DNA of 55,514 nt, filler included, from Platydemus manokwari (GCA_037951405.1; 5 parts of 5 records of this genome joined end to end with filler, not necessarily neighbours in it); one strand, 5' to 3'; positions 2,378-41,601 are shown, counted from the whole stretch's first letter. Made by a program: numbers and translations. The notes: generated by a model from the letters alone, not told the origin.

Positions 2378-3298
2378 CATAGGAGCATATAATTATTAAA
2401 ATAAAACCATCTGAAGTTTGGAGCTAATGAGAACCAAACAGTATTAAGAAATTATTTTTTTCTGTTCATTGTTTTTTCTTAAAATGGCAAACAACACTGA
2501 GACTATTCTTTATATTTTAATTTTCGCGCTTCATCTCCTGGATGTCTTTTGCGAGTAATTTATTAATTACTTTCGATTTCTATCTTACTGCCGAAATTAG
2601 TATTAATTTTTAATAATGACCTTAATTATAAAAACATTTCCATTAATAATTGATTGTTTCTAATTATATCGATTATCTATTATTTCTTTAATATTTATAT
2701 CAACAATAATTTTATTATAAAACATGTGTTCATTATTTATTCATTATTTATGATATCTTAATTATTGTGAACTTGGTGAACAATCTTCTATTTACACATT
2801 TGTTTAGATTTACAGTTTCGTTCAAATTTTCGTTAAAGTTCATAATTATTATTTCACGTTGGGTTTAATTTTTTGTTATAAATTGTTCAAAATTACTACT
2901 TCTCACTTGGTGGTTTGGTAATTTCATTGATATTGAAGTTGTTTTTGATTCTGACTAAAATAAAAATCATAGGATTTATAATTAATATTGATTTATCGTG
3001 TGGGAAGTAATGACGATTATATAATATCATGGATTTATAAATCTGAAAAAAAAATGATGAGTTCAAAAATAAACAATTAAGATAAAGCCATTAAGAATAA
3101 GAGCTAAAGTAAAGAATAAACAAATAAATGCAACTTAATAAAAAGTAATATTAATCAGAAATATAATTATATAAACTAAAATTAAAAAAATTTTAAACAA
3201 AATGAAATTATATTACTATTAATTACGAGGCACTGAAAATAAAATATTTTATAGTTAAAATAAATATTAATAGAGCAAATATTGAATTTGTGGATAGT

Positions 3299-3409
3299 AA
3301 TAGCAATTATCGACTATATCCGGTAATTGGAATAAATAAATGGGAATTCAAAAATAATGATAGCAATTACCGACTGAGTCCGACAATTGGAAGAAATAAA
3401 TGGGTTCAT
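3299..3409 (+). repeat. Two-copy 60-bp tandem duplication
   Basis: TAGCAATTA.CGACT...TCCG..AATTGGAA.AAATAAATGGG at 3301 and 3361. Confidence 0.85.
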
Positions 3410-6400
3410 GCTATAGTAAGTATGAACAACAAGATGCACACAGAAGGGATGTACATAGCGAAAATAAGTATATAAATAAATATATAAGTATATAACTCCT
3501 TATTTTTACCCATTCAACAAGAAAACTTCGAAAGTAAGATGCTATTTGTTGTTTTAGTGGCTTGCCATGCAACAAGTGTATTGTTTTCGTATTAGCAGCG
3601 CGCAAATCGGTATAATAATAAAGAATTATTGTGTAATATTAAGCAGGAATAGATTCTGAGCTGAGGTATTCAGCTGAAGTGTCGGGACTTAGTCCCAGTC
3701 TTATTAGGATAACTTTATAGGGGCTTGTGTTCTCTCAGTGTTAATTTTGCGTAGTAAATTGTTGTAAAAATATAACTTAATCAGAAAGTTGTTTTTACTT
3801 AGTGTGCACCGGATTTTGAATAAGAGCCAGATTAGGAGAATAAGACCAAGTCGTTAAGTTAGAGTAGTGCTAAACTTAGCAAAAATATTAAACCTTTTAT
3901 TTAATAGAAAAAATTAAAATTGTATTTTTTTGAAAGGGAATTTACGTATTAAATCATAATAAAATCAATTGATAAATAGACTTGAAATATGTCAAGAAAC
4001 AGAGCCAAACATTCAAATCATTCATTAAAACCAATTACAGTTCACAGTTAAAGATTTAAAACAATTTCATCATTTGGGTTTTCCATTTTATGTTGTTTAA
4101 ATTTGATAAATAAATGAATCCATTAAAAAAATTCACGCAATCGCACAACACTCGTTCCCAAACACGATTCCATTAGTCGACTGATATACGATAATAATTC
4201 TGGAAACTAATATTCCCAGCTTTCACTGTATAGATCATCGAATGCACTTTCCATTTCTAATTGTCAATCAAAACATTATTTAGTCACTTTTAAATAAATT
4301 TCAGTAATGATATTTCAATCTTTGACTTCGTGCCTTACTAATAATTTTAATTGATTATAATTCAGGAATCATTTATTTTATCTCATATATTTTATATTCC
4401 AAGCAATTTTCGATAAATGTCTATAGTATACTTAGACGTATTCAGATACAGCCAAACTTATTCAAGATAAAACCCATTATGTCAATTTTTCTTAAATTCT
4501 TATTTAAAAATAATATGGACACTCTGTTGAGTAGGACGTAGTCTTAGAATAGAAAAATGGATTTACATCTTTCTGATTTTTTCCATTTAATCAAAATTAA
4601 TTGATATACTTAAGTGCATCTTATAATAGTTCTTAAAGACCTTTACAGTTCAATGAGTTCAAAGCTCATAGCATTATGCATCGAGAGAGAAAAAATAATT
4701 AAATGTAGTTCATTTCAAGTGCTTTTTGTGATTGAGCGTGCTATCTAAATCACGCTGCTTTAATGCAAACCTGTACATTTTTCAACTAATCTTTAAAAAT
4801 TTTAGGGTCATCCAAAACCTTGTACACCAATGATAACAACCAACTGGAAACTTTTATTGATCAAAATGTTAGAAACAAAGGAGTTTTACTTGACTTTTAT
4901 AAAAACCAATTTTTTTATTTTATCTACTAACATATTAACTCTGAAAAATATATTTAAGCAATATTTAGAAAATTTGTTACTTAGCTTATCTTCTTTAGAA
5001 ATTGTATATGTTCCATTATCAAACATTTCCCGGAAAGTCCAGTTTCTTCACAATTATAAACATTTCTATCTTTCGTATTCCTTCAACTTTGATTTATACA
5101 ATTCCTTAAAATTAAGAACAAATCCTTCATCCATATTTATGATTATTCAATAATTCTTTTAGGCGATATCACGTGTCTTGAAACAAAAGAATTAAATTTT
5201 ATGCTTTAAAATTATGATTTCGAAAGTCCTCTCACAATTTTAACGCTTTCTGTTGCATTATATTACTACTGATACTAATATTTCTTGTTCTCTGGATCTC
5301 GAATCCTCTCAGCATCAACTTCCCGACTACTGCGTAAATGTAGTTTCGTTTTTTATTAAATTTTTAAATTTGCTCATTGTTCTAAATTATTAACAATGTT
5401 TTTATTGGAAAATCGATTTTTAAAAGGATTCCTATAGTTTTGATAGGTTTCGACTGAAATGATTTTGTGCTCATATTGAATTGGTTTGATTGTATTATTT
5501 TACTCATAAACTTGAACTATTTATGTGTATTCTTCAGTATTTTCTCTTTGATAAATATTTAGACACCATCCTATCACTTATGTCGATTTCCGCCGAATAT
5601 CGAAAATATATAGGATAATAATAAATTGTTCAATCAATCGATTCTGCACCCTTGGACTAATTAAAATTTATTATCAGAACTTTTTGTAAATAAGTGATTA
5701 ACCTTCAAATGGACTGACTCCAAATTGAACAAAAAGATTCCTGTCGATTAATGGGTGATATGAATAAAAATAATGTTTAAATTAAAGATGTCCGAAAAAT
5801 ATGATAATGCATTAGGATGTATTCTTGGTTAATTAAAATTTAAAATTTGATTTTAAAGATATACAATGATATTTTATTGCGGAAAGTGATTGGATAGATC
5901 TGTTAAATTCCCACTCGTTTCGGGTAGTACTAAAATTATCAAATAAATCATTCATCATTTATTCCAACAATAAATCTTCAAATCAATTCTGAGGTTAAAT
6001 AACCCCTGGGAAATACAAATCAAAACCCATCATCAATCTTTATTCCGAAAATCAATTCAATTCATCAGAAAAATCAATGATTTTTTAATTATAAACAATA
6101 ATTTGATTTAAAACATTAACAGCGAATTGGGTTTTAATATTTTGATGTTTAGAATAAATGTATAACCCGATAATTTTGACATCAACATCTGAATATTTTA
6201 TCTTTTTATATCATGTCTTTTGAATTCATAAATGTATTGTATCAGAGAAACTAGAGTCAAGGATTTAAGGGAATAATAGTAGAAATTAATAAAATATTAC
6301 AACCAAATAAGAATAAGAGTAATAAATAATATAAACAGGCAAAATAATAATAAATAATAAACTTGGGGAAAAAAAGAATTTTAATAAAAAGATTAAGACA

Positions 6401-7037
6401 AATTAATAAAAACGAAAAATAATAAACTTTTGATAATGATTAGTAATAAAAATACAAGCTAAGATCTATGAAAAATGAGAAAATAATATTCAAGCCGTAA
6501 TTAGACAGAAAATTTCCTTTGAGTTTAAGAAATAATATTAATAATAAATGAATTTAGTAAATTAAAGAATCACCTGAAACATCAATTTAACCTACGAAAA
6601 ATAGAGGTATAAATACGGAATAATCAAGTAAATCCACTACAATTTATTGGTTATTATTGTATTCGGAATTGCTTCCTTTTCGGATTTTGAATATTTGCCT
6701 TTTTTATTGTTGCTAAAATTATTGCCGCTTCTTCTCCTTTCGCGTTGGATTTCCAAATATCTATTTGAGTAGTATGTTGTGTGTCGCGTGAAAAGTTCTA
6801 TTATTTTTTACTGCTAAATCATTTAGCCTTCTAAAATATATTTTATTAAACATCAATAAGTAAATAGGGTTTTTCGAATGTTCGAGTTCATATGTTTTTA
6901 ACATATATTGAGACTCGTAACTATCGTGACTATTAATTAAATCGTATTTAGTATTCAAATAAAATCGACTAACTCATACTCAATCCGATTATCACTCAGC
7001 TGCACTTAATGATATATCAATTTAAAATCCTTTAGAT

Positions 7038-31461: not shown

Positions 31462-31855
31462 GTAACAAAAATTATGAAAAACTATAAAAGCAATACGTGA
31501 TTAATGTTTTATTTGATTTTTCAAATTTTTGAAACCATTTAAATATCTTGTTCGATTTACAATTGAATATCAGCAATCACTGTTTATATTTGGCTACTTG
31601 ATTTATCAATGATTAAGATATATGAAGCCTGTCACTCAATCATTAGAAGTCGCAAAATAAAATCCAAATAATGGTAAATATTTTAGTTATCAAACAATAA
31701 CTCAAATACAAATAATTTCGAGTCTTTCGTGCGTGCCAAATGATGCATGAATGAATCATTATTTATGATGGGTTGTGCTATTCCAACCCACACAGGTTAA
31801 ATGATAATTTTATGAATTTAAAGTGATATCTCAAAATTTATCTTCAAATATTTTA

Positions 31856-33847
31856 ATGATGAATTTTTCATTTCTATGTACTTTAACGCTTAGTTTAATT
31901 TTTTATCATTCTTCACGAGTAAATGGAGAGTCTGAGAAATGTTTGAAAGTGTTACTCCCGAATATTCGAAAGTGTGATAGTGAAATTGCGAGAATTGACC
32001 AATATTGTATTCAAGGTTACAGAAATATCAATAAAAAATGCAAAGGTATCGATACAGAGCATTGTGCTCTTACGTTTAGAAAATTTACAGCGTCATGTAA
32101 AAAGAAAAGAGAGCTTTTTTCGAATAAATGCAAACCGCTTTATGATGGTTATAAAAAGGAATGCGGTGAAATGCCTGCTTCGTATTATCAAAAAGTGGGT
32201 CCAGAATCGTTTAGATGCTTGAAAGTGCTAACACCACAAGTTGAAGTTTGTGATTCAAAAATTGCTATTATTGATAAACAATGCAGAAAAGAATATGAAA
32301 AGATTGATAAGGAATGCAAAGGAAAAGATACCGATGAGTGTGGTAACAAGTATAAAAATATCAAAAAAATATGTCTAACAAAAAGGAAAAATTTCTTTCA
32401 ATCGTGCAATCCAACTTATCAGGCATACCAAAAAGAATGCAAAGGAAGTCCTGCTGTTTACCCTCCTCCAACTGGACCAGAATCGGACAGATGTTTGAAA
32501 GATTTAATTCCAAAAGTGCAGGCTTGTGACAAAATGATATCCGAAATTGACAAGTATTGTAATAAACAATACCATATTGTCGACGAACTCTGCAAAGGAA
32601 AAGATACGGATGAATGTGGTTTGAAATTTAAGAACATTCAAACGTTATGCAAAAATAAACGAAAAAATTACAAATCAAAATGTGGGCCAATTTATGGTGC
32701 ATACAATAAAGAATGTAAAGGCGATTCGGTTGCTAAACGTCCAACTACCGGCCCGGATTCAGATAGGTGTTTAAAAGAACTGATTCCAGGGATTAAAAAC
32801 TGTGACAAAAAGGCATCCAAAATTGAAAAGTTTTGCAAGAACGGGTTCAAGAAGATTGATTCTATATGTAAAGGGCAGGACACAAATGAATGCGATTTAA
32901 AATATAAGAAGTTTAAGATATTATGCGAAGCAAGACTAAATAAATACAAAAAAGTCTGTGGAATAATTAATATTGCCTATAAGAATGAATGTACAGGGGC
33001 ATCCATTCCATCTGTCTCTGCAGGTGTCGACATTAGTAATTGTTCTCATGAATTAGTTCAATCTCTGGATGTTTGTGATGATTATATATATCATATTGAC
33101 AGTCTTTGTTATCAAGGATTTATTAAAATAGAAAAAAAATGCGAAGGCAAAAGAACAGAAAAATGCGGTATTAAATTTAGAAAATGGACTGATTCATGCA
33201 AAGAAAGAAGACAGAATTTTTGGAAAATTTGTAGCATAATTTACGAAGGCTATTTTCAAGAATATGCAAAAGTTCACGGAAACAGTGCAGAATTTCTCAA
33301 GAAAAGGCTATATTTCGAATCCGTAAAGTTGGAAGAATCTATCAAAGCAATAACACCTGCAAAATCTACAAAATCAGCAGCTATAAAAATCCCACAAATT
33401 TCAATTAAGCAATCCACAAAGTCAGCCAAATCGGTAAAATATTTAACAGCTACGAAAAATAAGACGATAATAAAAACAACATCAAAATCGCCAATACCTG
33501 TGCCACTCAAAGTAATAATCAAACCTCCTATTAATGGGAAAATTAACAGAATTCCTTACAGTACTTGTAGGAAAAGTTTGGTTCTTTCCGTTACCACATG
33601 TGATATAAGGACGACAAAGCTTGATGAATACTGTAGTTCAGGATACAAATCAACTCATCAACTATGTAAACGAGTAAGTAAGGCCAAATGTGGTTTAAGC
33701 TATTACAAATTGACTACGATATGCAAAGCTAAAAGAGAAAATCTTAGAAAAACATGCCAACCGATTTACGATGAATATCAAGATGACTGTGAAGGACAGT
33801 GTTTATCGCTAACAAAAACTTCGGACATTTTCTCGCATAAATTTTAA
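31856..33847 (+). CDS. Secreted Cys-rich repeat protein (663 aa from the first ATG) with six CX10C-ladder modules and a K/S/T/P-rich spacer
   Basis: Intronless 2-kb ORF in AT-rich DNA. The ORF track starts at GTG 31823, but the first in-frame ATG is 31856, followed by a signal-peptide-like stretch (MMNFSFLCTLTLSLIFYHSSRVNG). It has six 75-aa modules with spacing C-10-C-10-C-10-C-7-C-10-C-10-C-10-C and an ATTAAA at 33871. A clear paralogue lies at 38373-39509. Confidence 0.93.
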   Translation: MMNFSFLCTLTLSLIFYHSSRVNGESEKCLKVLLPNIRKCDSEIARIDQYCIQGYRNINKKCKGIDTEHCALTFRKFTASCKKKRELFSNKCKPLYDGYKKECGEMPASYYQKVGPESFRCLKVLTPQVEVCDSKIAIIDKQCRKEYEKIDKECKGKDTDECGNKYKNIKKICLTKRKNFFQSCNPTYQAYQKECKGSPAVYPPPTGPESDRCLKDLIPKVQACDKMISEIDKYCNKQYHIVDELCKGKDTDECGLKFKNIQTLCKNKRKNYKSKCGPIYGAYNKECKGDSVAKRPTTGPDSDRCLKELIPGIKNCDKKASKIEKFCKNGFKKIDSICKGQDTNECDLKYKKFKILCEARLNKYKKVCGIINIAYKNECTGASIPSVSAGVDISNCSHELVQSLDVCDDYIYHIDSLCYQGFIKIEKKCEGKRTEKCGIKFRKWTDSCKERRQNFWKICSIIYEGYFQEYAKVHGNSAEFLKKRLYFESVKLEESIKAITPAKSTKSAAIKIPQISIKQSTKSAKSVKYLTATKNKTIIKTTSKSPIPVPLKVIIKPPINGKINRIPYSTCRKSLVLSVTTCDIRTTKLDEYCSSGYKSTHQLCKRVSKAKCGLSYYKLTTICKAKRENLRKTCQPIYDEYQDDCEGQCLSLTKTSDIFSHKF

Positions 33848-35558
33848 TGTTATTCCTAAATTTGAAAACAATTAAAAATCTTGAAATAATTGGCCATTGT
33901 AAAATGTGCTCAATTAGGTAGCTTTTAATGTTTTAAAAATATTTTTGCCTTTGTCCCAATGTATTGTTTTAATGTATTTTTGTTTTTGTTATTTTTACTA
34001 TTAGTGATTTCGATCGATTTTCGATTAATAATTATTTTTATTAATAACAAAAAAATTATCAACATGGTAATGTTTTTACAAGCGCTTCATATTATTTAAT
34101 ACACATAATGCCCTAATGAAATAGCATATCAAATTGATAGATTAGAAATCATGTATTTAAACGAAGTACTGCATTTTGATTTCGAATCGGTTAAGTCTGG
34201 AAAATTCGAAATATTAATCTACTTGATATTTAATTTAAATGATTAAACCTATTTAATAATAATATTTTTTCAAGCGACTTTTTTCATAATTAAAATTTTA
34301 GTTTCCTCTTAATTGAAAGTACTGTATTTGTTTTCATAAGCGAAAAGTAAATAACAATACAAATAAATAAATACGAATATAAATGATTAACATGTTATGC
34401 CTTGAGTCGCTGGTTTCATTATAATTAATTCTATTCTATTATAATACTAATCCTCACTATCTACGACTGCTATCAGCCTATTGGGTCGTATTCGACCATC
34501 AGTAAGTAAATTAATCCTAAATAATTGATCGTTTTTCGCCGAGAAGTTTGATGAAGTATATAGTAATAAGCGGAATTTTTATTTCTATTGACCATAAAGT
34601 TTCCAAAATTTACACGAAGTTATTTTCCATACAAAAAAACTTATAAATTTAATAATATTTTATACATTAATATATAAATCAATGCACGAATATCGTCAGA
34701 TCATTGGAATTTAAATTTGTAAATAATCCCAAACCCCAAACAAAGTTCAAGATTGTCAAAGTTAGGAGTCAAATTTTGTGTATCACAGCGCAATTTTGAG
34801 TGTTTAGTTATTCTTCATAAATGAATTATTTTTGTTTTGAAACAAATACTTTATATTTTCGTCTAACATTTTTACTAATAATGATTTAAATGATCGAAGT
34901 CATTAAAAATAAACATAAGATCTAAATACTAATAATAACAATTACATAAAGTATTATTAAAATTAGCAGATGTACTAGAATTTGCTATAAAAATAAAAGA
35001 TCAAATAACATTATAGACTAGACATAGTAAACAAATAAACAAATATAAAAAGAAAACATAAATAACTTAACTTTTAAATATTATGCTTTTAAAAAGTAGC
35101 ATTAATATAGACATAGTAAAAAACACAATGAAATGATTGATTAGTAGAGGGACCACACCAAAGGATCCATGCTTACAAAACGAAGTAAGCGACTCAGTTT
35201 ATTTTCAAAATATTGAGAGTTCTAGCTATTGTTGCTGTGAGAAGCTAGAGTACACTGAAGTACTTTATTGTATCAATGGTATAGTTAGCTTACATTGAAC
35301 ATTAGTTTTCATGTCTGTTACAGAATGTCTGTTACTAATAAAACTACTAAATTACTAAACTACTTGTAATTCTAGAACAAGTATTGAAACCTAGTCATAG
35401 TTTAGAACATTATTAACGTTTTGTGAAGTGTGTGTAAATCGATTAAAAATAATTATCAAAACCATAGGAGAAATCTTCAGTGTTGATACACACAGACACG
35501 ATATATACAAGTTCCAGTAGCCAATTTTTTTGTTTTCCCTTTGTGAAAGCAACTTAAA

Positions 35559-36010
35559 TGTCATCCTAGGGATATATATATTTAAACTACGTAGCTGGAA
35601 AAAAAATAGCTGGAAAATTTTTTTAAATTATCGATTTCTCAATAAACTTCGATAGTTAGTTGGTACACACTAACGACCAGAAATGAATCTCGAGATACGG
35701 CCATGCCAAGGAAGTTAGAAGAAAATTTCTCAATATAGTAATCTTCAGAAGTTTCTAACAAATGGAAAGCAAATTTGCAAGGCAACAGATAAAAGGAGTT
35801 GAATATCGAGGTCTTTTCTGCATTTATTTTTATCTGTAATGTGTTCAGCTCATTGTGATTTTGACGTATTGCTTTTGGAACTTTTGTGTTTCTGAGTAAG
35901 TTTGATTTACGATTTTTGAGTGTTGTACTTTGACGATCTTATTGGATTAGTACGAAATGTTATTTTACAATTCTAGCTTTGAGAATTCAGCTTAGGCAAT
36001 TATCGTAACA
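35559..36010 (+). mobile_element. Probable LTR related to 18740-19312
   Basis: Shares ATAAAAGGAGTTG and CTCATTGTGATTT in the same order and ends in TAACA. The 5' boundary is uncertain. Confidence 0.4.
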
Positions 36011-37417
36011 ATTTATTAAATACCGAGTACACTTTTGATTTGCTGCATAATGTTTTGTATTTAAAAAATCTTTACAATGAGAAATGTTCATTATTTACTA
36101 TCGATTGATGAAAGTCTGATACAGAAAGAGAAAGTTTAGGAATTGAACTTCTTATTTGAGAAAACTAAGAAAAATTACATTAAGACTGGAGTTAAGATGA
36201 ATTTAATACCCAATATTTACTCACTTCCAAACGCAGCCTTAAATCTTCAAAAATGAATAATACATTTAAAATCTCTCAACACAAAAACGTTCGCTAATTC
36301 TGATAAACTAGGATATCTGAAATAGGAGTAATAAATTGTTAAGTCAAGGATCAATGATTTTGTTATTTGTGGAACTTAAGAATAATATCGATGAAAACAC
36401 ACCACTCGTTGTTTCTACTCTAGTGAATGAATTAAAGAGCTGATTAGATTCTGATTGTAGAAATGGAAACATTATTGATTAAAGTCAAATTGATCATTTT
36501 TAGAGGAATTAAAAGTCATGATGGTTGATTCATTATTAGTTAATTATGTTGGGAAAATATAAACAGACTAGTTCTCTCCTTGGAAAGTGAAGAAATTGAG
36601 TGCGCCAGAGGCCGAAAAAATACCCATCACTTGTTAGCCTATATGGTGCATTGAAAAAAGAAAAATACCGAATCAGAGATGGTAAGATATCGTACCCAAA
36701 CAAACAAGTATGGTCTGATAAATAAAGAATCAAAAAATGAACCCCAGTACAACACTTAGTAACGGTGGCACAGTGTAAAAATGATCTGAGAAGAGACCAG
36801 AGTGGAAAGAACAGGATTTCGAATTTGGATGCCTGAGTTAGAGATAGAATCAGTCCCCTAGAACAAATGTTGAAATTCCTTCGAGTACCACAAATCAATC
36901 CAATCCCAAAGACATTTATATTTTGATAAACATTTATGGTCCTTTCTTTAAAACATTAACTTGTTTTGGTTCCTTTAAACATTTATGATTTAATAATTAC
37001 TGATTTAAAAATATATGACACTAACAAGTGTATAAGCTGATGGATTTTAATCATAAATGACTCTTGTAAAAATTGTAAACGATAACTTGGTAATCAATAC
37101 TAATAATTTGATAAATGATAACAATCGTTATAGAAAATCAGGATGTTGTCAAAAATAATAATTCTTTCTGAACATAATAATTTGGTAATTTGATAAATAA
37201 ATAACCGATAATTAAAAGACCATACGGATCGCACCTTTAGGATTTCCAAAAACCATATTTTTAAACTTTATATTTGCAAAATTATTAAGGTGTTCTTGAG
37301 CTCACGGCAAGATAATCTTAGCAATTTGTTATTAACTGATATTTGCTGAGGTAAACTTTTGTAAAACTCAATTTATAAATAATTACTAATCGCATTGTGC
37401 TCTCATTTTTGATAAAT

Positions 37418-37680
37418 TAACGGATATCGCCAAATAATATGACTCATACTATTGAATAGTATGACTATAAAAATAAAAAATATTGATCATATTATTTGGG
37501 TAGTCATACTATTCAGTGCTTTCAAAAAAAATTAACACTTTGCGTTGGAATTTAGGTTGTTTAAAACATATACATGATCCAAATTATTTATTAAACATCA
37601 AAAACTTCATAAAAATTTGGTCATACTATTCGGGTAGTCATACTATTCGAGGTAGTCATACTATTCAGCGATATCCGTTA
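37418..37680. mobile_element. TA-flanked MITE with subterminal repeats
   Basis: Perfect 13-bp inverted termini TAACGGATATCGC and GCGATATCCGTTA, with multiple GTCATACTATTC motifs in both orientations. Confidence 0.8.
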
Positions 37681-38372
37681 GTTATACATATAAAGGAGCT
37701 CTTTACCTTTAAGTTGCCAAACATAATTTAAAACCCACAACTCAACAGTTATGACAAACATAATAGTGTAATATATTCGATGAATCGAAATATTACTTTG
37801 TTATCCCATTGTATTTTTTATCAACGACCACTTATTTTGATATATATTTTGATCCATCTAAAATGAGTGAATCAAAATCCACTTTTGTGTTGGATATTTC
37901 CTTGAAATATACTTAAATAGTTGTTGAAATGATCCATAAAATAGGTAAAATAATAATAATTATTATTATCAGTGTCGGTATTTAATATGCATCATAGCTT
38001 TATACATTTAACTTCAATTTCGTAATAAAATTTGACTATACTATAATGTTTCATTCGACAATATGAATTAGGGATTCTAAATTTAATATTCTAGTAATCC
38101 AGAAAAAAAACTCTAAATAAGACACAAGTCTGAACAGGCCATTTATACCAAATAAAACTTATCAAGCCTAAAATGTAAAATGCTATCAATTATTGTAAAA
38201 ATTTATCACAAAAGATTGAAATTATAAAACAAACAAATTTATTGAATTCTATTAAAATTTCATCCAATAAACTTCCAAAATTGACAGAGTTGAACATCAA
38301 CTTTGATCTTAATTATAAAACACCAATTATTATAATTATGAAATTAAGTAAATATTTGCTAACTTCTTTCTT

Positions 38373-39509
38373 TTAACCTGCTCTTACAGTGCATTCTTTC
38401 TTATAAGCAGCAGTGATGGCATTACATCTCCTGTTAAATGTTTTTTCTCTTTGTTTACATTTTGCCGTAAACTGAGTGTATCTTAATCCACATTCAACGG
38501 TGTCTTTTCCCTTACATTCTTGATCAATTTCTCTGAATCCATTGGTACAGAACCTAGTGAGTTTGGCACCATCGGTATCACAAATCGCTAATGCTGGTAT
38601 CAATTGTTTCAAACAACGGTCAGATTCTGGTCCTGTTGACGGTGCGACTGGTGCTCCAGTACATTCTTTTTTATGCCTTCTGTATAATGGTGTGCACCTC
38701 GTCGTGTACGCCTGTCTTCTGTCTTTACATCCTTTTTCAAATAGCAAAGTTTTTAATCCACATTCAATCGTATCTTGTCCTTTACATACTGCTTCAATTC
38801 TCGCAATTCCTTCAGTGCATTCTCTGTCGATCGTCGCTATTTCTGCATCACACTTATTGATTTCAGGAAGCAATTGTTTCATACATAAATCTGATTCTGG
38901 TCCTGAAGCCGGAGCTGCAGATCCACCTCCAGCACATTCCTGTCTAAAGCTTGCATATATTGGCCCGCATTTCGATTTATACACTCCTCTTCTCTGTTTA
39001 CAATCTAGTGTTAATTGATTGTATCTCTGACCACACTCTACTGTATCTTTTCCTTTACATTCGCTATCAATATTCTTGAAACCTCTGTTACAATATTTAT
39101 CGATTTCAGCAATTTCAGAATCACAAGTAGCCATTTGAGATACCAGTACTTTTAAACATCGATCTGACTCCGGTCCGCTTTGCGGTTTAACAGACGGACC
39201 AGTGCATTCTTTGTTATGTGCAGCATAAAGAGGCTTACATCGAGCATTGTAACCTTTTCTTTTGTCTTGACAACGTTTTTCGAATTGTAAATATCTCAAT
39301 CCACATTCAATTGTGTCTTTCCCTTTACATTCGATATCGATATTGGCGATTCCTTCATTACATCTTTTTTCAATACCAGTAATTTCTCGATCACATTTTT
39401 TAATTCGTGGAAGTAAATCTTTCAAACATCGATCTGAATCGGGTCCAAGACCTTGTGAATTTACAACATTGATAACCAGATATAGAATAAAAAACAGAAA
39501 ACTCTTCAT
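38373..39509 (-). CDS. Secreted Cys-rich repeat protein (378 aa) with four perfect CX10C-ladder modules
   Basis: ATG start, signal peptide MKSFLFFILYLVINVVNS, four 75-aa eight-Cys modules joined by 15-16 aa Pro/Gly linkers ending GP(E/D)SD(R/L). There is a TATA/Inr upstream and an AATAAA at 38238-38243 on the minus strand. Confidence 0.95.
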   Translation of the reverse strand: MKSFLFFILYLVINVVNSQGLGPDSDRCLKDLLPRIKKCDREITGIEKRCNEGIANIDIECKGKDTIECGLRYLQFEKRCQDKRKGYNARCKPLYAAHNKECTGPSVKPQSGPESDRCLKVLVSQMATCDSEIAEIDKYCNRGFKNIDSECKGKDTVECGQRYNQLTLDCKQRRGVYKSKCGPIYASFRQECAGGGSAAPASGPESDLCMKQLLPEINKCDAEIATIDRECTEGIARIEAVCKGQDTIECGLKTLLFEKGCKDRRQAYTTRCTPLYRRHKKECTGAPVAPSTGPESDRCLKQLIPALAICDTDGAKLTRFCTNGFREIDQECKGKDTVECGLRYTQFTAKCKQREKTFNRRCNAITAAYKKECTVRAG

Positions 39510-39524
39510 ATCGTTTCAACAATT

Positions 39525-39561
39525 AGCTAATGGATTTTTCACGTTTTATCAAATATTTATA
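39525..39561 (-). promoter_or_regulatory. TATA box plus initiator-like core promoter of the 378-aa gene
   Basis: Minus-strand TATAAATA at 39561-39554, with an Inr-like CCATTA whose A (39531) is 30 nt from the first T of the TATA box and 22 nt upstream of the ATG. Confidence 0.55.
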
Positions 39562-41467
39562 ATACAGTTGAAGTGAGCTTCTAATCCGTGGGCTCAACTG
39601 TAGGACTTGACTGATTGTTTTGCGCTAGGTATGTGACTAATATCTGGTTTGCTGAAATTTTAGCCAAATCATGTCTGCAATAACTCAGTTTAGAGGATTT
39701 CCACTGAGAAGATGATTCAATACTTATGAACTATATTTCTAAATATAGAATAATATAATTGTCTGTCAGACATTTGAAACGATCAGCATCGATTGTTATA
39801 ATAAAAACAATAATTTTATTTCTAATAATTTTATTTAAAATTATACACATACATATATATATATAATGATGAATATCAATGAGTAAAATGTATAACAAAA
39901 GTCGACTATCTTTGAATTAATTACAAAGGCTTGTTAATTTCCCTCAAACAATACAACAATTACATCAGTAATATTAAAAGCATTAATAATTTTAATATAC
40001 AATAACTAAATGATAATATTTATAATAATTTACATTTTCTTCAATGAATTTTTTTCGGATTTGTTTGTGGTGAATATCCAGGTAATATTTTTACTACACA
40101 TATTGTTTTGCCGACCACATGAATTGATTTTCAAAGTCATAAATATCTTTAGTGATTTGTCGGCATCACTGATTTTTACAGTTATATTTAATATTTCTAT
40201 ATAGCATAATGATAATTTTGAGAATAATATATGCTTACAGTAGAAGACTCTTTAAATATTTCGACCCAAGTATTAAATATAACTAATTAGTAAAGTTATG
40301 AATTGATATGATACATCAGTGTTTTTAGAAAATGAAAATGAAATTTCATGAAAATATAACTATTTTTAATAACATTAATAATGTTTAAGAATCTGAGTTT
40401 TGCAGCTGTTTATAAAATAAAATCCTGTGATCTTTGTCGTCTTTGGCATATGGGTTTGTTAATATCTTGGCGTTCGTTATAGCTTGTTTAAATCTTACTC
40501 TGATTGTTTCAAGTGTAATACTACAAGCTATTAGTTTATTATTGAGGAGATTGAATTTATTTGATTTTGCATCAATGCTGCTATTTGATTGTGCATATTT
40601 GTATCACAAATCTCAATTAGTAGTAAGTAAAATCAGTCCTTGACTTCACACTCCAAAAATAATAATAATATATAATGTATAGTGAATCAAAGACCAATTT
40701 ATAATGTAAAATGAATCTGAGAACAATATTAATATATATAGCAAGTAAAAATTGATTAAAATTTTGAAAATGTGTATTAAAAAAAATATAAAAAAATGGG
40801 CGAGTATAAATGTCAAATATGTGATAATAGCTTAATATTATTCAGGGTCTTAAATCACACGAAAGATTCAAAAAACATATAACAAATATAAATAATGATA
40901 ATAATTATGATAATGAAATAATATATCCATAAAATTCCATATTTAATTTTCTATAATTTGATATATAATTTATTAAAACCCTTTCAATACCCCTCTAAAT
41001 GAGTTCAAAACAAAATATGTGCTGGGTCAAAAAAATCTAATAACATAACACATGTTGACAATTGATACTTTACCGATAAAATTTCAAAATAATCAAGAAG
41101 ATGAATATGTATGTTGAAAAATTCTCACTCTCCGTGTTTGCGTGCGGAAAAGTTATATTATTATGATTTCCATTATAGTTATAAAATTATAAAGAACTAC
41201 AATATATGTTTAAGAAAAATGAAAAATAAATTTGGAAATAAAAAATAAATTTTTGGGAAATCATAAACATCAACAAATTTATTGGTTGGTTATTTTTAAT
41301 TTTTGGAAAATCATTAGTTCTCACCTAAAAAGAAAAAAACATTCATTTTATATTTTTAAATAATTGATTATCAAATAAGATTATTAATAATGTAACAGTT
41401 AAATATAATAATAATTATATTTAATTAAAAATAACATGTGTTTAAATTAAATGTTAGTAAAATAAAA

Positions 41468-41601
41468 TCACTTTTTCAAATTGTAAATCTCATCTTCTGG
41501 TCTACGCAATGCAACAATAACAGGCCACAATGCTTCTCCAGCACAAATGCTATATGGATCATCGACGAGACTACCCGGTGACATAATACCAGCATCATCC
41601 G
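41468..41601 (-). CDS. Probable terminal coding exon of an unidentified gene, truncated by the contig end
   Basis: A locally GC-richer open frame, DDAGIMSPGSLVDDPYSICAGEALWPVIVALRRPEDEIYNLKK*, runs from the linker to TGA and is followed by AT-rich UTR-like DNA. Confidence 0.55.

Follow-up and report, generated by a model that had tools for sequence, protein, structure and literature searches.

What do two convergent genes encode that carry, between them, ten copies of one cysteine-rich module and match no named family? The genes, here called A and B, lie on one piece (positions 31462 to 41601) of a window of 55,514 nucleotides, in which parts of five records of the Platydemus manokwari genome (GCA_037951405.1) are joined with filler; the window is the whole stretch of DNA that was analyzed, and positions are counted from its first nucleotide. 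An earlier reading of this DNA, made from the nucleotides alone and called here the sequence-only reading, had proposed a new family of secreted proteins composed of helical hairpins, each stapled by a ladder of disulfides. We think it probable that A and B are indeed secreted proteins in which such hairpin modules, each with four nested disulfide rungs, are strung like beads, and that they act outside the cell.

Two genes built from an eight-cysteine module

Both open reading frames (ORFs) were recovered, uninterrupted and intronless, as the convergent paralogues that had been described, 4.5 kb apart (Table 1). Chance ORFs are excluded, because the probability of a stop-free frame, calculated from the base composition of the piece, is 8e-26 over 663 codons and 5e-15 over 378 codons. 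A regular-expression search with the pattern C-X10-C-X10-C-X10-C-X7-C-X10-C-X10-C-X10-C found five perfect copies in A and four in B. The tenth copy, module 5 of A, has cysteines 1 to 7 in register and a tyrosine in place of the eighth. Thus, of the claim that ten copies share an invariant spacing, the spacing and the absence of insertions and deletions (indels) stood, and the complete set of cysteines did not. A six-frame scan with a hidden Markov model (HMM) and tblastn revealed no further module, intact or decayed, elsewhere in the piece.

The ten modules align over 83 columns with zero gaps despite strong divergence, their identity to the first module of B (B1) ranging from 27 to 61%. Seven of the eight cysteine columns are invariant, together with a leucine at C1+4 (four residues after the first cysteine) and an aspartate at C2+1. 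The turn reads C-K-G-x-D-T-x-E-C in 8 of 10 modules, and 7 of 10 are preceded by a linker that ends in G-P-(E/D)-S-D-R or a one-residue variant of it, frequencies that agree with the "usually" and "most" of the sequence-only reading; modules 5 and 6 of A, the divergent C-terminal pair, deviate in both motifs. When the sequence is counted in units of 11 residues with cysteine at 0, hydrophobic residues concentrate at positions 4 and 7 in both halves of the module, as had been reported, and positions 0, 4 and 7 correspond to the core positions a, e and h of a hendecad coiled coil. Small or capping residues also recur, with glycine at C3+3, C4+2, C5+1 and C7+1 in addition to the aspartate at C2+1. 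The linkers between modules are 15 to 17 residues long and rich in proline, glycine, alanine and serine. Modules 5 and 6 of A are separated instead by a spacer that is possibly mucin-like (Table 1).

The two proteins are basic, with an isoelectric point of 9.3 for A and 8.8 for B. Protein B contains 32 cysteines and no N-glycosylation sequon; A contains three sequons and 49 cysteines, one of which lies inside the predicted signal peptide. An extra cysteine in the C-terminal tail of A, four residues past module 6, offsets the lost C8 of module 5, and mature A therefore has an even number of cysteines. Inspection by eye showed that both proteins start with a short hydrophobic stretch followed by small residues (in B, "...VVNS" before QG), which fits putative cleavable signal peptides. 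Hydrophobic N-termini with small residues at positions -1 and -3 were likewise seen by eye in the relatives P0001 to P0004, P0007 and P0008 described below, and a signal-peptide-like start is present in A, B and every relative with a complete N-terminus.

Table 1. Features of genes A and B in the window, with modules given from C1 to C8
Feature	Positions	Strand	Remarks
Gene A	31856..33847	+	ATG at 31856; 663 aa + TAA; uninterrupted ORF, intronless, six modules
Predicted signal peptide of A	31856..31915	+	about 20-24 residues, hydrophobic core FSFLCTLTLSLIF; judged by eye
A module 1	31940..32164	+	regular expression, HMM, tblastn
A module 2	32216..32440	+	regular expression, HMM, tblastn
A module 3	32492..32716	+	regular expression, HMM, tblastn
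A module 4	32768..32992	+	regular expression, HMM, tblastn
A module 5	33041..33265	+	divergent seven-cysteine variant, Tyr at C8 position
A spacer, modules 5-6	33266..33565	+	100 residues, low-complexity, rich in K, I, S, T, A, P
A module 6	33566..33790	+	divergent, atypical turn; followed by 18-residue tail (33791-33844)
Gene B	38373..39509	-	39509 to 38373; 378 aa + TAA; uninterrupted ORF, intronless, four modules
Predicted signal peptide of B	N-terminus of B	-	18 residues, predicted cleavage between VNS and QG
B module 1	39204..39428	-	regular expression, HMM, tblastn
B module 2	38934..39158	-	regular expression, HMM, tblastn
B module 3	38661..38885	-	regular expression, HMM, tblastn
B module 4	38391..38615	-	regular expression, HMM, tblastn
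TATA-box-like TATAAATATTTGA	39549..39561	-	52 nt upstream of the ATG of B

Predicted hairpin fold and proposed pairing of the cysteines

The module was modeled with AlphaFold2 (AF2), using the ten modules as the alignment. The prediction is a helix-turn-helix hairpin, with helices at residues 5-40 and 46-81, a mean predicted local distance difference test (pLDDT) score of 90.8 and a predicted template modeling (pTM) score of 0.74; all five models agree (pLDDT 89.8-90.8). In the model, helix 1 closes with C4, and helix 2 has C5 as its third residue. Full-length B, modeled with an alignment of three proteins (B, P0001 and A), appeared as four separate hairpins, with a pLDDT below 50 for the linkers and the signal peptide and a pTM of 0.28. 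The low-confidence linkers and the low pTM argue that there is no fixed packing between the modules, and the model is compatible with rods on flexible linkers. The structural part of the sequence-only reading, namely two-helix hairpins in hendecad register, carried on Pro/Gly linkers, is therefore supported by these predictions in every part that can be tested computationally.

At 100 degrees per residue, a stretch of 11 residues completes three turns plus 20 degrees, and four cysteines spaced by 11 therefore share one face of a helix. With spacings that mirror each other on either side of the turn, the cysteines of the two helices would face each other in pairs. Residue i faces residue 88-i in the module model, which gives the pairs C1-C8, C2-C7, C3-C6 and C4-C5. 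We infer that these are the nested disulfides of the module, on the grounds of the mirror symmetry and of its symmetric extension in one relative, P0007. This protein of 162 amino acids and 13 cysteines is encoded at positions 1284-1772 of contig L004, from the same sample as P0001. Its cysteine spacings are 8, 11, 10, 10, 10 and 10, then 7, then 10, 10, 10, 9 and 10; it thus holds the eight-cysteine pattern within a longer ladder, in which up to six rungs can be placed mirror-symmetrically, with one cysteine left over. The position sums of the candidate pairs are 202, 202, 202, 202, 201 and 200, the ladder being lengthened on both arms. A nested hairpin ladder predicts that rungs are gained in pairs of cysteines, and this mirror-image gain hence supports nested pairing. 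Though a single sequence, P0007 is the best evolutionary evidence for the proposed pairs.

The recurrent small residues can be placed in the model. The glycines two residues after C4 and C8 would be helix C-caps, the Asp/Thr before helix 2 and the Ser/Asp before helix 1 would be N-caps, and the glycines beside C3, C5 and C7 would permit the close approach of the helices that disulfides require. In module 5 of A, where C8 is a tyrosine, C1 has no predicted partner. This cysteine and the extra C-terminal cysteine of A may pair together or form intermolecular cross-links.

These elements can be assembled into one account. Each 75-residue module would fold alone as an antiparallel pair of helices, some 35 residues each, connected through the five-residue loop K-G-x-D-T; the cysteines would occupy hendecad position a, and the hydrophobic residues at e and h would complete a narrow core. 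Passage through the oxidizing secretory pathway would close the four nested rungs, and the disulfide-pinned module would be a rod of about 5 nm in length, stiff and highly stable, capped by the conserved C-x-G after each helix and the D, S or T before it. Flexible linkers rich in Pro, Gly, Ala and Ser would join such rods with no fixed contacts between modules.

Relatives, selection and genomic setting

A profile built from the ten modules was searched against the full set of 1.84 billion representative proteins with a cut-off of E ≤ 1e-3. The search returned seven matches, six of which are true relatives (P0001-P0005 and P0007); the seventh, P0006, a repetitive protein of 1455 amino acids, was rejected as spurious. 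Word-index searches with B, the family alignment and P0007 as queries added only P0008. P0001, a single ORF on a 1.5-kb Logan contig (L001), is the counterpart of B: it has 378 amino acids, four modules, the linker lengths of B and 54% identity to it. P0002 to P0005 and P0008 are proteins of 127 to 137 amino acids, composed of a putative signal peptide, one module with the eight cysteines in register and a C-terminal tail of 22 to 30 residues. The tail is strongly acidic in P0002 and P0008 (charge of -9, against +5 and +4 for the modules). All modules of P0001 to P0005 and P0008 keep the eight cysteines without indels. No relatives were found in IMG/VR, in JGI metagenome contigs or in GTDB prokaryotic genomes, and a feature search of the ESM Atlas with B, P0002 and module A1 gave no usable match. 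The family is very rare in public data and lineage-restricted.

Comparison of B with P0001 yielded a third-position identity of 41%, a dN of 0.35-0.38 and an LWL85 dS of 1.6. These values indicate that the genes are old and under purifying selection, with every cysteine kept; as synonymous sites are saturated between the two, purifying selection is meant here in a broad sense only. In a tree of the modules, a single clade (support 92/90) unites the multi-module proteins and leaves the single-module proteins outside. Positional orthology of the modules was unsupported: B1 groups with B3, and module 2 of P0001 with its module 4, which points to lineage-specific duplication or conversion of two-module units. 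An internal duplication, with helix 1 and helix 2 derived from one ancestral half, was also considered and rejected as too weak (hhalign probability 69%; identity outside the cysteines 10%, versus 7-8% in shifted controls).

The piece that holds A and B is AT-rich (26% GC in non-coding DNA) with no CpG depletion (observed/expected 0.9), and scans for RNA genes found no tRNA or Rfam family in it. The loci of the relatives, too, are all AT-rich and lack introns; a TATA-like motif stands some 40-50 nt upstream in three of five. The 13-mer TATAAATATTTGA upstream of B occurs identically at positions 147-159 of L001, 48 nt upstream of the ATG of P0001, and this box is the only non-coding stretch that can be aligned between the two loci. 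Upstream of P0007, an 86-codon ORF at L004 345-605 resembles, by eye, a fragment of a retrotransposon Gag protein.

The sole sequencing run that holds the locus, X1, covers it evenly at about 10-15x. Genes and spacers are covered alike, and X1 is therefore genomic DNA, probably that of the source sample itself. It includes contigs that are 90-95% identical to parts of gene B (38640-39420), for example with 21 differences over 274 nt at 39099-39372; they represent either another allele of B or one or more paralogues of very recent origin, and the family may thus have more than two members in this genome. Between A and B lies an element resembling a miniature inverted-repeat transposable element (MITE) at 37415-37683. 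It has terminal inverted repeats of 30 nt, 87% complementary to each other, and GGTAGTCATACTATTC sub-repeats inside. The summed contig depth in X1 is 2,689-6,682 over 37282-37878, versus about 10-15 in the flanks, which argues that this element is present in hundreds of genomic copies. Two further intergenic stretches, 35889-36087 and 36685-37082, are low-copy repeats, with a contig depth of 38-59 against about 10-15 around them and the loose ends of several contigs beginning there. Base composition, the absence of CpG depletion, intronless genes with TATA boxes and plentiful MITEs together indicate an AT-rich eukaryote.

Possible role and comparison with known systems

Several observations weigh against secreted hairpin rods as the answer. 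The alignments given to AF2 were shallow and consisted mostly of paralogous modules. Conserved prolines fall inside both predicted helices between rungs 1 and 2, at position C1+6 (14 of 20 modules) and position C7+2 (10 of 20), and the hairpin may therefore be kinked or non-helical toward its open end. There was no RNA run among the runs that hold the locus. In addition, the fast divergence of the module surfaces, with 27-60% identity from module to module, would also fit a role in recognition or conflict.

As to what secreted rods of this type might do, we tentatively favor an extracellular material with a structural or protective function, for example a surface coat, an egg or cyst envelope, mucus or an adhesive, a possibility to which the basic character of the proteins, the spacer-like linkers with almost no dibasic sites and the structural nature of the conservation all point: the conserved positions of the module are almost all structural, and its surfaces vary. 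Basic, hyperstable rods would serve as spacers or cross-linkable units in such a material, with the odd cysteine pair of A (C1 of module 5 and the C-terminal cysteine) as a candidate intermolecular cross-link.

The main alternative, which we regard as unlikely though worth keeping in mind, is that the module is an autonomous bioactive unit, acting for example as a toxin or antimicrobial, or as a pheromone or recognition ligand, and that A and B are multivalent or precursor forms of it. The single-module relatives stand alone as small putative secreted proteins, the combination of a basic module with an acidic tail in P0002 and P0008 recalls the anionic propieces of cationic peptides, and the modules of A and B carry net charges of +1 to +10. 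They also diverge rapidly from one another, and cystine-stapled helical hairpins act elsewhere as toxins or defense peptides, as in nemertean B-IV and plant alpha-hairpinins. However, no dibasic processing sites were found in the linkers of B or P0001, and KR occurs in only one linker of A; the linkers are instead conserved Pro/Gly-rich spacers with a helix N-cap motif at their end. At 75 residues the module exceeds typical hairpin toxins, and neither Pfam nor the Protein Data Bank (PDB) revealed similarity to a toxin family.

More improbable still is that the ORFs are real and their products adopt another fold or chemistry, with helices paired between chains or between modules, intermolecular disulfides, or cysteines that bind metal. 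The prolines in the predicted helices and the unpaired C1 in one module of A would be compatible with this, and AF2 is prone to favor helical hairpins when alignments are shallow. Nevertheless, the X7 turn shows strict conservation and is flanked on either side by helix-capping residues, pairing between modules is impossible in the single-module relatives, the five AF2 models agree, the gain of rungs in P0007 is symmetric, and a signal peptide implies folding under oxidizing conditions. We therefore retain the stapled hairpin within each module.

Whether the module belongs to a described family was addressed with whole proteins, single modules and relatives, none of which scored above the curated threshold of any Pfam or NCBIfam model. 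Sub-threshold matches to Colipase-like, BRISC_FAM175B_helical, GDNF, COX6B, Kazal and defensin models were rejected as driven by cysteines or coiled coils. The best-scoring Pfam model was PF15083 (Colipase-like), which, as is proposed for the module, represents a small secreted cysteine-rich domain, of similar length. Four modules matched it in one register, C1 to C8, with 25.4 (E of 1.6e-5), 16.5, 13.8 and 11.7 bits against a cut-off of 27 bits, and the remaining modules gave no match. HMMER overstates the significance of matches when a sequence contains about 11% cysteine, and the four matches are not independent, as the shared register is due to the homology of the modules. The colipase fold is a beta-rich finger fold with five disulfides, in contrast to the all-alpha prediction with eight cysteines obtained here. 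Colipase presumably contains a series of cysteines some 10-11 residues apart, which would suffice for the PF15083 score, and the likeness is probably limited to coinciding cysteine positions; membership was therefore rejected. GDNF/GAS1 (PF02351) reached at best 16.9 bits with P0007 and 13.9 bits with protein B (cut-off 22). COX6B was matched weakly by 4 of 10 modules (best E of 0.7, 9.1 bits, cut-off 26), and there was no match to CHCH. BRISC_FAM175B_helical (PF22299), a cytosolic coiled-coil segment, gave only local matches of 23-26 residues at positions 31-57 of its 62, with 13.7 bits or less for a single module; its whole-protein sums were 23.7, 25.7 and 29.4 bits, and no stretch of P0001 passes by itself. 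With every score below its cut-off, a beta-rich colipase fold and CHCH proteins that lack signal peptides and use CX9C, it is very improbable that the module is a divergent member of the Colipase-like, GDNF/GAS1 or CHCH/COX6B families.

Searches for known structures led to the same point. Sequence searches of the PDB with the protein and with the module profile found nothing below an E of 0.2. Structure searches (Foldseek against the PDB, the ESM-Atlas shape search and VIA-align wide) retrieved generic long helical hairpins only, including designed bundles, MORC2, EsxGH and YscO, with Z-scores of 8.5-9.7, an uninformative range for helical models; none of the matches listed is a cystine-stapled hairpin by its title. 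The significant match to a characterized domain that would have undone the claim of no named family did not turn up in the profile, PDB or Foldseek searches. Neither did we find in the literature a description of a CX10C, disulfide- or cysteine-ladder, or eight-cysteine helical-hairpin protein like the modules described here.

On balance we lean toward an undescribed superfamily defined by a hendecad-phased disulfide ladder with an evolutionarily adjustable number of rungs (four, and up to six in P0007), confined to one AT-rich eukaryotic lineage and occurring as single and tandem rods. In that case the hendecad ladder would be a natural extension of the two-rung CHCH principle to long, hyperstable extracellular rods. 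If the proposed pairing is true, the module is, to our knowledge, the first natural helical hairpin with at least four regularly spaced disulfide rungs; it would then add a family to the catalogue of cystine-stabilized folds and offer protein engineering a genetically encodable, hyperstable 5-nm rod. The finding settles no long-standing question. It marks a lineage-restricted group of putative secreted proteins, present as single modules and as arrays, that are probably part of an extracellular structure or interaction of an organism with sparse coverage in databases.

The closest known construction is that of the twin-CX9C, or CHCH, proteins (COX6B, COX17 and the CHCHD4 substrates), which are helix-turn-helix hairpins with cysteines on one face and nested disulfides, as is predicted for the modules. 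They have two rungs, a CX9C spacing and no signal peptide, are usually single domains and are oxidized by Mia40 in the mitochondrial intermembrane space, whereas the modules of A and B have four predicted rungs, putative signal peptides and a tandem arrangement. Their spacing is X10 throughout with four cysteines per helix, and no sequence match was significant (the COX6B match above; best E of 0.88 in the PDB). A 10-residue spacing, as in CX9C, drifts by -80 degrees per step and serves two rungs only; with the 11-residue spacing of CX10C, simple geometry allows three or more rungs to remain in phase along a nearly straight helix.

Nemertean neurotoxin B-IV, which has four disulfides, plant alpha-hairpinins and scorpion kappa-toxins are secreted antiparallel helical hairpins stapled by disulfides, as the modules are predicted to be. 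These hairpins differ in their much shorter length of about 30-55 residues, their irregular cysteine spacing (CX3C in hairpinins) and their lack of tandem repeats. No B-IV-like toxin chain was found in the PDB at E ≤ 10 or among the best 50 matches each of Foldseek and VIA-align.

In architecture only, and compared by description, A and B also resemble the mate-recognition (MMR) genes of rotifers, which are intronless, encode a signal peptide and head-to-tail repeats of 87-92 residues predicted to be helical, lack database homology and occur as paralogue pairs that differ in repeat number (PMC2746195). The MMR repeats are nearly identical, acidic (pI of about 4) and directly abutting, and no cysteine pattern is mentioned for them (PMC2746195).

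The closest known systems, CHCH hairpins and cystine-stabilized alpha-hairpins, are thus analogues in construction and not relatives. The cystine-stapled helical hairpin is a known class; what is new in A and B is the predicted phasing of many rungs on an 11-residue repeat and the stringing of such modules in tandem arrays.

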